This document shows, piece after piece, positions 54,501 through 57,155 of a stretch of DNA of 64,000 nt. The DNA comes from Magallana gigas (taxonomy: Eukaryota). The notes under the pieces were generated by a model that did no database searches, was not told where the DNA came from, and was given only the letters and a program-made list of their open reading frames with translations. The position numbers and the translations under genes were made by a program. Every line of letters begins with the position of its first letter. The first letter of the stretch is position 1. The stretch is taken from contig NC_088855.1 of NCBI RefSeq assembly GCF_963853765.1, positions 41,912,001 to 41,976,000 of the forward strand, read 5' to 3'.

Positions 54501-57155
54501 ACAATCGATTACCTGCTAGTTTTGCATTTCTAATATCCCACTTGCCAAGTTCTGCAATAGATCCAATAATTGCGAGAGCTAATCCTTTCTGTGATAATGA
54601 ATAATCACAGTCTACCTGTAACCTAACCATGGTGGTAAAAGTACTTTGAAAGAAGTCGATCACTATCAAAGAGGATATCACACAATGATTGCGACGTCAT
54701 AGTACTTCACAACGTCACAATACACAAACTTCATTATTGTGACGTCCATTCAAGATTTTAAAAGATATACGAGTGCAATAGCTTTATATTCTATAATTTA
54801 AATCTATATACATTTGCCAAATTCATCAGCCTTAGGCATGCTACTACGCAATTACATGAACATATCAAAGTCTTTCTCGACTTTGTACATGCATGTAAAA
54901 ATCAAATTTGGGAATTTTTGGATATGTTATATAAAGGTTGTAATTAACACTACGTAATTTCGGTTACCTGCAACGACCGCTCTCTCTACCTCCCAGTTCC
55001 CCAGGACATCTAGAGACCCACATACAGCTAAGTACTTGGTCTGTGTGTCTGCATTGAACTGGGTCTCAAAACTGACCCTAATTCCGTCAGCAGAATTCAT
55101 GCTTTAATTTGTCACGACCGAATTAAAACCCACTCATGACCATGAATTATAAATGCATGCCATAACAAATACATCGTTCCTTGATCCGACGTAACAAAAG
55201 CGTGATTACACGGTGCGCACACTAAGAACGACCTTGAAAGGCTGCACAATTGTAAACAAATACATGTGTGTACATGTACAGCACATGTGCGTGTGTACTT
55301 GTTACGGTTAANNNNNNNNNNNNNNNNNNNNNNNNNNNNNNNNNNNNNNNNNNNNNNNNNNNNNNNNNNNNNNNNNNNNNNNNNNNNNNNNNNNNNNNNN
55401 NNNNNNNNNNNNNNNNNNNNNNNNNNNNNNNNNNNNNNNNNNNNNNNNNNNNNNNNNNATTACAATATTAGTGGAATTCACATTATCATTTACCATAATT
55501 GTTATACTTTTATTAATAATTTTTATACTATTCACTGGCATATCATCCTTTTGTAATTGTTATAATTTCATAGTCCGTTCTGGACTCTGAAAGCAATATG
55601 AGCTGTATTTTTTAGAATTTTATTTCGCTGCAAAAACCTGCTAGTATACTAAGTCTGCCTGTAACTTAAACTTTTATAATAAATAAGATTTGGAAAAAAT
55701 CATTAATTTTTGTCAGGAGAAAGATTTCACTTATAAGGAATATATAGCAGATCAATTTTTGTACAGGACGACAATAATTCAATTTTGCTCCAATTTAGGC
55801 TTCTTAATGGCTTTTCCCACAAAAACAGAGCTAACAGAAATTTTAAAACCATGATATTTTTGTCATTTTAGTAGAAAATAACATTTTCTTTAAAAAAAAT
55901 TTGAACATGAAAATTGCAGCTCATATTGCTTGAATTAGAAATAAATGTTTTGTTCTGTTCTATTTCACTTGCTGCCAGCGTCATTTTTAATTTATTTTCT
56001 TGCAAGAAATATATAGTTACGCCCTACCTAAAGTCCAAGGTCTTGTTAAAATGGTTCTATATGTTGGCGTTTAAATATCATATACTAGTACATATGGAAC
56101 TCTAGATGCAGAGGATTTCATTGTTCTTTCTTTTTAACATGGCATCGAGTCTTGAGCCATCAAATATGAAATATCAACAGTTTCTGGTTTTCCGTTACAT
56201 ATACTTTACAAAAATGATGAAAAGCAAATATTTTCATTTCAATTCAGAATTTAAAAGTTTTGATATTAAAAATAAATAAATGATTATTACAGATTCCTGA
56301 TTATCAAGAGCGCGCGACAGCCGCAATCTGTCTTGTGATTCTTCTCTGAATTCAAACCTTACTATCGACAAGTCTCTTGTTCACACTTGTTTGACAATAA
56401 GCTCATTTGATCCACCATCCTATTGTCCTAACAGGCGACCTCTGTCATCTTGTCGCATTTTTCCCGGTTTTGACGTTTTCATTTTTTGATGAAGGCGAAT
56501 TTTGAAAATCGCCATATAAGCAATCAAACACACAAATCGTAATAATGACGGGGAAAACGGACTTTTTTCATGTTTCTTCATTTATAATTGCATGTTGTCA
56601 TTCGTTCATATCAAAATGCTATATAGACCTAGATCGAATAGAGTTAAATGTGTTCTTCTAAGGTTGTGTAGAATTTAGCATATTGTCAATTTACAAGTAT
56701 ATATTTGTGCATTTCGTAATACATACGTGCTGATTAATTATGGAATACTACTTTTAGATCAACCCTAATATCATCTTTAATAAATTGCAGAAATATGAAG
56801 AATTATACAGATTTAATCAAAGTGGAACTCAATTAAAACCCACAAATCCAATCTAATTACGTGTATCAAACAAAATGTAACTCGAACCTGTATGCTTCCA
56901 TGAAAATAGCGAATAAAATAGTGGGGTAGATTGTTGTTGTGCACTGATTTAGATCGGGTTGTTAGTGCGTACTTTCTATATTGAAACGACATAGAAATTA
57001 TGTTAGACACCATATACCATCAGAAGAAGTTGATTACCTGCCAGCACAGCTTGTCGAACACTCCATTGACCTAATTGTGGTATAGAACCACTGATCGCTA
57101 CTGCATGGCCTTCGTGTTGTACCACGTAATCTGTCTCGAACTGGACCCACACCAT
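51590..57155 (-). CDS. CBM20 starch/glycogen-binding domain protein (STBD1-like) with three alternative N-terminal exons; isoforms of 189, 194 and 189 aa
   Basis: Variable exons 57155-57038, 55100-54968 and 54630-54513 (each GSI/L-x-x-LG-x-W, ending GCAG|GTAA, phase 1). Shared exon 53974-53756 (DESPENSGKWIVTVNLPANVKFEWKWVV...RWEERANR...APWN) and last exon 51822-51590 (DGVMWTSEDD...HDHDD*). Confidence 0.85.
53381..53620. repeat. Second, partly deleted copy of the hairpin-headed repeat
   Basis: TAAGGAATC...TTATTATGAGGTGATCAAA...CCGAAGGGCTT...TTTGATCACCTCGTAATATTCAAAGAATAATTCCTTA plus the tail shared with 28411-28750. Confidence 0.65.
54513..54630 (-). CDS. CBM20 variable exon B (proximal)
   Basis: MVRLQVDCDYSLSQKGLALAIIGSIAELGKWDIRNAKLA-G|GTAATC; 118 nt; start context ACCACCATGG. 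Confidence 0.85.
54968..55100 (-). CDS. CBM20 variable exon C (middle; not in the ORF track)
   Basis: MNSADGIRVSFETQFNADTQTKYLAVCGSLDVLGNWEVERAVVA-G|GTAACC; 133 nt. Confidence 0.8.
55312..55458. other. Assembly gap (N run)
   Basis: 147 N bases inside the variable-exon cluster. Confidence 1.
57038..57155 (-). CDS. CBM20 variable exon A (distal)
   Basis: MVWVQFETDYVVQHEGHAVAISGSIPQLGQWSVRQAVLA-G|GTAATC; 118 nt. Confidence 0.85.

Follow-up and report, generated by a model that had tools for sequence, protein, structure and literature searches.

Clusters of homologous first exons, in which every exon has a separate promoter and is joined to shared constant exons, are known from UGT1A and from the clustered protocadherins, and in Dscam exons 4 and 6 encode the N-terminal halves of Ig domains (PMC3364881). 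STBD1 of the Pacific oyster was characterised as a glycophagy receptor, reported to bind glycogen through an N-terminal CBM20 domain and also GABARAPL2 (Ren et al., Commun Biol 2026, PMC12913940). Here we describe the STBD1 locus of Magallana gigas, on the minus strand of a 64,000-nt stretch of the genome (assembly GCF_963853765.1, contig NC_088855.1, positions 41,912,001 to 41,976,000), referred to below as the window. The locus is probably one STBD1 gene with three cassettes of promoter and first exon, termed A, C and B, in which the choice of start swaps about a third of the CBM20 domain, with C as the default and A and B as minor or conditional forms.

Organization of the STBD1 gene

The coding exons of the gene, in the direction of transcription, are:

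57038-57155, minus strand: first exon A, 118 nt (39 codons + 1 nt), from ATG to a G/GT donor
54968-55100, minus strand: first exon C, 133 nt (44 codons + 1 nt), from ATG to a G/GT donor
54513-54630, minus strand: first exon B, 118 nt (39 codons + 1 nt), start context CCACCATGG
53756-53974, minus strand: constant exon 2, CBM20 strands beta3-beta8, with W54, K69, W83, N88 and W104
51590-51822, minus strand: constant exon 3, acidic linker and long C-terminal helix, stop TGA

An earlier note on this DNA, made from the letters alone, had reported three minus-strand exons, each with an ATG and a phase-1 donor, and all of its coordinates and features hold. The donors of A, C and B all read GCAG/GTAA in phase 1, and each exon opens with ATG. 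When A, C or B is joined to exons 2 and 3, intact open reading frames (ORFs) of 189, 194 and 189 amino acids (aa), respectively, are obtained. The gapless alignment of the two 118-nt exons A and B given in the note was reproduced, with 19 of 39 residues identical (48.7%). Exon 3 begins after the acceptor tttaaag/AC at 51822, and the 3′ untranslated region (UTR) runs to approximately 51404, with an AATAAA at 51384-51379.

Each first exon by itself matches positions 2-36 of the Pfam CBM_20 model (A, E = 9.6e-7; C, E = 1.9e-3; B, E = 2.8e-4), and exon 2 alone corresponds to positions 45-91 (E = 3.2e-8). Relative to the PF00686 cut-off of 23.3 bits, exon A (29.0) and exon 2 (33.7) are above and exons B (21.0) and C (18.4) just below; full-length C-type proteins carry PF00686. 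The structural properties of tandem duplicated alternative first exons are present, i.e., homologous exons, an ATG for each, equal donor phase and one shared downstream exon.

Identity with the oyster glycophagy receptor

The gene is identified as Pacific-oyster STBD1 (STBD1-alpha, LOC105333128), and its exon-C form as the published 194-aa protein, on the basis of the length of the coding sequence (CDS) and more than 15 quoted residue positions. A phmmer search with exon 2 against 1.8 billion representatives found a 194-aa protein that is 99% identical over exon 2 and begins with exon C. The published CDS of 585 nt (194 aa) agrees with the exon-C form of the window. Residues Q14, F15, W36, K69, R82, W83, E85 and N88 of the published protein fit this form, as do W104, N105, E106, Y110-L113, Y145-V148 and F177-I180. 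The positions of the predicted Atg8-interacting motifs (AIM), Y110, Y145 and F177, are present and lie in constant exons 2 and 3, and are thus common to all three forms.

Binding of alpha-glucan was reported for the C form by co-sedimentation, and the oyster protein was described as having no N-terminal hydrophobic domain and an expression that responds to fasting (PMC12913940). It should be noted that the text of that paper does not contain the words isoform, exon, splice, variant or promoter, and that it treats the gene as coding for one protein. Thus the published work covers one of up to three forms, and the gene is already known and functionally studied, as the C form only.

Three side observations concern the STBD1 family. 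A Trp with acidic residues (MWTSEDD, window 51790-51815, in exon 3) and an EKLA helix are conserved across oyster STBD1 tails. The tail of C. virginica reads W-S-N-V, which is of the W-x-x-V Atg8-interacting motif type, a type reported as absent from C. gigas (PMC12913940). The third-best match to exon 2 is a protein of 5420 aa from Lineus longissimus (P0003) with at least eight CBM20 repeats, and it fits the multi-CBM20 “STBD1-delta” class mentioned in the same paper.

Copy number and the assembly gap

Exon 2 is a single copy in the 564-Mb genome, and first-exon copies are found at the A, C and B positions only. Within the window, permissive tblastn (E up to 50) detected no further copies of either constant exon, and whole-genome protein searches of the 564-Mb assembly detected no hidden second-half or tail exons elsewhere. 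The earlier remark that only one second-half exon (53974-53756) is visible is thereby extended from the window to the genome. The search for hidden exons also gave a weak match with a stop on contig 5 (E = 0.26).

One feature of the assembly requires attention:

55312-55458, no strand: assembly gap between exons A and C; the exon C ATG is about 210 nt downstream of it

It could be proposed that the first exons belong to separate genes, or to a misassembly, with more second-half exons in the gap, and the gap does sit between A and C. No exon, reading frame or RNA contig extends over it, and the C-type RNA contigs stop before reaching it, at 55129-55189. In four related oysters the loci are gap-free and have a matching layout, with a single exon 2 and no second-half exon between A and C. 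The gap-free relatives, together with the uncrossed gap, show that the hidden-exon objection, which the earlier note had itself raised, fails. Exon 2 also occurs only once in the genome, exon B starts a mere 338 nt after the end of exon C, and C transcripts are spliced straight to exon 2. Separate genes or a misassembly are therefore hardly conceivable as an explanation.

Conservation in related bivalves

The corresponding loci of relatives have the following exons:

Saccostrea echinata (L006): first exons A, C and B; one exon 2, one exon 3
Saccostrea cucullata (L009): first exons A, C and B; one exon 2, one exon 3
Crassostrea virginica (L007): first exons A and C; one exon 2, one exon 3
Ostrea edulis (L008): first exon C only; one exon 2, one exon 3
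Pinctada imbricata (L010): a single first exon; one exon 2, and a tail exon unlike oyster exon 3

Every first-exon copy of these relatives has kept the ATG in frame, an open frame and the phase-1 G/GT donor. Lenient tblastn found no B in C. virginica and no A or B in O. edulis, both loci being gap-free.

In the RefSeq annotations of the relatives, A, B and C are variously connected to one common set of downstream exons, in agreement with the proposal of one gene with variable first exons on a constant remainder. At LOC111133408 of C. virginica, isoform X1 is A-type and isoform X2 is C-type, with the same downstream exons. At LOC133172000 of S. echinata, isoform X1 is C-type and isoform X2 is B-type, and S. 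cucullata has A-type and B-type models; in both Saccostrea, isoform X2 begins with B. All of these RefSeq isoforms are automatic models. Alternative isoforms from the NCBI pipeline normally need RNA support.

Dispersed three-exon paralogues are found on other chromosomes of O. edulis (L017; P0004, P0062, P0068), with an A-like first exon, the same phase-1 intron and an upstream TGACGTCA. The genome of the window has no such dispersed paralogues. Isoforms and paralogues seem to replace one another: there are three first exons in one case and a C-only locus plus paralogues, in Ostrea, in the other.

Selection and age of the first exons

When 6.7 kb of the window were compared by blastn with each relative locus, exons A, C, B, 2 and 3 alone aligned, collinearly and almost exactly end to end. 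Pairwise ratios of nonsynonymous to synonymous substitution (dN/dS) are 0.08-0.40 for A, B and C types alike, with exon B at 0.2-0.4; these ratios are rough, as dS is saturated and exceeds 1 in all inter-genus pairs except the C-type pair of the window and C. virginica (0.50). There is an excess of synonymous changes in every comparison of the window with Saccostrea (p = 5e-6 to 0.006). In the comparison with C. virginica the excess is found for A (p = 2.5e-5) and is weaker for C (p = 0.028). Judged from these alignments, all three first exons are under purifying selection. The earlier note had suggested such selection from the intact state of the exons, and had named neutral ratios for two of them as an outcome that would speak against it; ratios in this low range are found for all types, and the ORFs are intact.

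In a tree of first-exon peptides, the C types of different genera fall into one clade (support 97/95) and the B types into another (95/97); A types are unresolved and group with the A-like paralogues. Since the C and B clades span genera, the triplication is older than the split of Magallana and Saccostrea.

These data bear on the possibility that A and B are decaying relics, transcribed as noise and evolving neutrally. The dominance of C in every RNA run, the loss of A and/or B in some oysters, and an exon-A allele in one RNA run with 3 of 118 nt changed, two of the changes non-synonymous (see below), are what such relics might display. However, flanking introns cannot be aligned between genera, whereas A and B align over their full length, precisely up to the exon borders. 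No copy has lost its ORF, ATG or donor, the synonymous excess is significant, and the CRE-type element upstream, described in the following section, is conserved. Relic exons are thus very improbable.

Two classes of upstream sequence

Elements upstream of the first exons, several of them of the cAMP response element (CRE) type, are:

57226-57298, no strand: three perfect TGACGTCA (CRE-type) palindromes, at 57226, 57259 and 57291, spaced 32-33 nt apart
55230-55236, minus strand: CAAGGTC motif, 136 nt upstream of the exon C ATG, common to the C-type upstream regions of Saccostrea and with a putative role only
54692-54747, no strand: degenerate CRE-like triplet GGACGTCA, TGACGTTG, TGACGTCG, upstream of exon B

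The exon A palindromes lie 78-143 nt upstream of the A ATG. In the window there are 8 matches to TGACGTCA, compared to 0.34 expected, and three of these are the copies upstream of exon A. A perfect TGACGTCA followed by (T/C)AAT is found 44-145 nt upstream of the ATG of every A-type exon, of B in both Saccostrea and of the Pinctada exon; the A-type exons of three other oysters also have an upstream TGACGTCA. In an O. edulis paralogue the motif occurs twice, 129 and 175 nt before the ATG. Of the A-type, B-type and outgroup exons, 8 of 9 are preceded by a perfect CRE, versus none of 5 C-type exons. The C-type upstream regions share CAAGGTC and TTTCACGC-like blocks.

By this comparison there are two classes of upstream sequence, a CRE type (A and B) and a C type. 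The conservation of a non-coding motif amid DNA that cannot otherwise be aligned argues for real and distinct promoters. TGACGTCA may act through CREB/ATF factors.

RNA from the locus

Four runs, three as contig sets and one as raw poly(A) reads, were placed on 51350-57300. All are oyster runs, several of which were called RNA by guess, and the splice joints considered are the 15 strongest of 60.

Joints 51822>53756 and 53974>54968 (GT..AG, minus strand) are found in all four runs; the second of these is the junction of exon C with exon 2, one of three junctions that the earlier note had proposed to map. Exons C, 2 and 3 are spanned by single contigs (X26 record 9 and X3 record 15), and the X3 contig extends to 51404, in the 3′ UTR. 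In the raw reads, first mates are on the plus strand only, and thus the RNA has minus-strand orientation. Among the first exons, C dominates, and it has a 5′ end of its own between A and C. Its 5′ UTR extends to at least 55132-55189, and the 5′ contig ends are at 55129-55189 for C-type contigs and at 57282 for A. The earlier note had left a choice between alternative promoters and mutually exclusive splicing. Separate upstream regions of two classes agree with the former. Mutually exclusive splicing of the Dscam type was rejected, as each exon opens with an ATG of its own, preceded by an in-frame stop, and is not internal; among the 15 listed of 60 joints in the four runs there was none that led into the 5′ end of A or C, and no sign of a shared upstream exon.

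Exon A is expressed. In X26 a 244-nt contig covers 57039-57282 and stops at the A donor, with a depth of 11.7 versus 39.5 for the C form, and 800 nt of the intron below exon A (56126-56921) have a depth of 0 in the same run. Thus the intron is either removed or never transcribed. Sequence words of exon A were also found in RNA-type runs of 13 studies.

Exon B is present in unspliced contigs that run unbroken over its donor (X1 records 5 and 6; X3 record 20). In addition, an internal exon is found within it:

54513-54615, minus strand: B′, internal exon, the 3′ part of B, with a cryptic acceptor AG at 54617-54616

The joint 54615>54968 connects the C donor to B′. It is present in run X1 only, with a depth of 20.6 versus 266 for C to exon 2, i.e., about 8%, and the C donor joined to B′ reads GGT AGA CTG TGA, which is a premature stop.

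This joint raises the possibility that only C, and perhaps A, makes protein in this species, and that B is kept as a regulatory or poison exon whose stop, after C, lowers the STBD1 output. The joint is a canonical GT..AG with a TGA after three codons, and exon B is otherwise found in unspliced contigs only. On the other hand, the short side of the joint is 24 letters and it comes from one run. The frame, ATG, strong start context and donor phase of B are conserved, with the low dN/dS given above, and a poison exon has no need of these; B is also the first exon of a RefSeq isoform in both Saccostrea. A role for B as a poison exon alone is therefore unlikely, although less so than decay of the exons.

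Several observations weigh against a gene with three coding first exons. The joints 57038>53974 and 54513>53974, which would connect A and B to exon 2 and which the earlier note had also proposed to map, are not among the 15 listed of 60 joints in the four runs. The donor of exon B is not detectably used in X1 and X3. Protein searches of transcriptome assemblies found no full-length A- or B-type proteins, only C-type proteins and unspliced fragments. Of the three changes in the exon-A allele of X26, two are non-synonymous, T8I and S24F, the latter within the conserved GS motif. A simple promoter reading is also hard to square with the start of the exon-A contig of X26, which lies upstream of two of the three CRE copies. 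A and B are dispensable in some lineages, B having been lost in C. virginica and both A and B in O. edulis. The saturated dS and the automatic nature of the RefSeq isoforms, mentioned above, belong here as well. With these points taken into account, one STBD1 gene with three promoter and first-exon cassettes is still considered the probable arrangement.

Other features of the RNA data are given here. The exon-A allele of X26 differs from the window at 57085, 57087 and 57133 (3 of 118 nt). Just upstream of the exon C ATG, 5 nt of the window (55103-55107) are missing from all three RNA contig sets, a 5′ UTR difference due either to an indel polymorphism or to a slip in the assembly. Two intronic segments, 53141-53737 and 55529-56125, are covered to depths of 1000-4500 in every RNA run and show numerous loose ends and odd joints; they resemble copies of a strongly expressed repeat or transposon outside this gene. 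A search of JGI metagenome contigs with a generic spliced junction (GCAG plus the start of exon 2) gave one match, which is an unrelated bacterial gene and was discarded.

The CBM20 fold and its binding sites

AlphaFold2 models of an A-type isoform (C. virginica) and a B-type isoform (S. echinata) display a confident CBM20 domain, with pLDDT of 92-98. In these models beta1, the beta1-beta2 loop, beta2 and the LGxW turn with the site-1 Trp come from the first exon, and the tail is a low-confidence acidic helix followed by a long helix. The eight-strand beta-sandwich with the site-1 Trp pair is present in the models. The closest solved structure is the CBM20 of human STBD1 (8x8k; sequence E = 1e-10), and the B model superimposes on it with a TM score of 0.91 and a root-mean-square deviation of 1.4 Å.

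Site-1 residues W36, K69, W83 and N88 are invariant across 20 sequences. The most type-specific segment (A, VVQHEGH; B, SLSQKGL; C, ADTQTKY) aligns to the TYGEN loop of the glucoamylase domain. In the glucoamylase CBM20 this loop is part of site 2. Residues aligned to the site-2 residues Q14 and F15 are D and Y in both A and B. The earlier proposal of variable binding surfaces built on one constant half is supported as regards the beta1-beta2 loop, which varies and is aligned with the site-2 loop; the site-1 Trp, carried by the first exons, is the same in all forms. In the published study, strong predicted glycogen binding was credited largely to site 2, with Q14 and F15 named as contributors (PMC12913940).

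Flanking genes

Neighbouring reading frames in the window fit the following genes:

58943-60040, minus strand: ORF of a SMAP-family gene
48735-49091, plus strand: ORF of a Tctex-1 dynein light chain
37629-43251, plus strand: ORF of TMEM132

In C. virginica, both Saccostrea and O. edulis the orthologous locus likewise sits between SMAP, on its upstream side, and Tctex-1, on its downstream side. TMEM132 follows Tctex-1 in the window and in C. virginica.

Proposed mechanism

The one-gene arrangement could have arisen as follows. An ancient tandem triplication of the promoter and first coding exon would have given cassettes in the order A, C, B. Each cassette would provide an ATG and residues 1-39 (A, B) or 1-44 (C), and would be spliced in phase 1 to common exon 2, for the rest of CBM20, and to exon 3, for the tail; in this species such splicing of A and B to exon 2 is predicted. 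Choice of the transcription start would then replace the N-terminal third of CBM20, whereby site 1 would stay constant and the beta1/beta2 face and the site-2-type loop would change. C is the default form in the sampled RNA, and A and B, behind the conserved CRE-type element, would be minor or conditional.

Regulation of A and B may depend on the CRE, and glycogen binding may differ between the forms. A tentative extension, possible but on the whole doubtful, is that a cAMP/CREB-type signal, such as in fasting or gametogenesis, turns on A and B, and that the altered loop and site-2 residues give these forms another glycogen affinity or particle preference than C. Ostrea would reach the same end by way of its A-like paralogues.

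Significance and comparison with known systems

The kind of mechanism and the gene itself are already known, and the isoforms are listed in the automatic annotation of relatives. No description was found of an oyster glycophagy receptor with three conserved half-domain alternatives and two promoter classes. A literature search gave nothing relevant on a CBM20 or STBD1 gene with an alternative first exon or promoter, and no description of alternative half-domain exons in human STBD1 was found in the literature.

Results obtained with one cDNA, or with probes or primers in the shared exons, may average over different proteins. This concerns in particular the site-2 residues Q14 and F15, as they sit in an exon that has two conserved alternatives. 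Glycogen content is one of the main quality and survival traits in oyster farming, and regulation of the isoforms is therefore of practical relevance and directly testable. The locus also offers a natural domain swap, in which a constant two-thirds of CBM20 is combined with three N-terminal thirds that have been apart since before the Magallana/Saccostrea split. In addition it is a clean case of isoforms versus paralogues, with three first exons in Magallana and Saccostrea and one first exon plus dispersed paralogues in Ostrea.

The CBM20 fold and the site-1 Trp (LGxW), Lys, Trp and Asn are shared by the oyster protein with human STBD1 (8x8k) and with the glucoamylase domain of Aspergillus niger (1ac0). 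In vertebrate STBD1 the CBM20 is C-terminal and a membrane anchor is N-terminal, whereas the oyster CBM20 is N-terminal (PMC12913940).

The splitting of a single fold by alternative exons, by which the earlier note had set the gene apart from UGT1 and the clustered protocadherins, has a precedent in Dscam exons 4 and 6 (PMC3364881). In the Dscam exon 4 and 6 clusters, and in the substitution isoforms that result from tandem exon duplication (PMC3364881, PMC8373072), duplicated exons swap the N-terminal part of one beta-sandwich, as in STBD1. However, the Dscam-type exons are internal and are chosen by mutually exclusive splicing, whereas the STBD1 exons each have an ATG and would be chosen by transcription start. 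In this respect the oyster gene resembles UGT1A and the clustered protocadherins, but the variable exons of those systems encode whole domains, whereas those of STBD1 encode about a third of one beta-sandwich and are present in three copies only.

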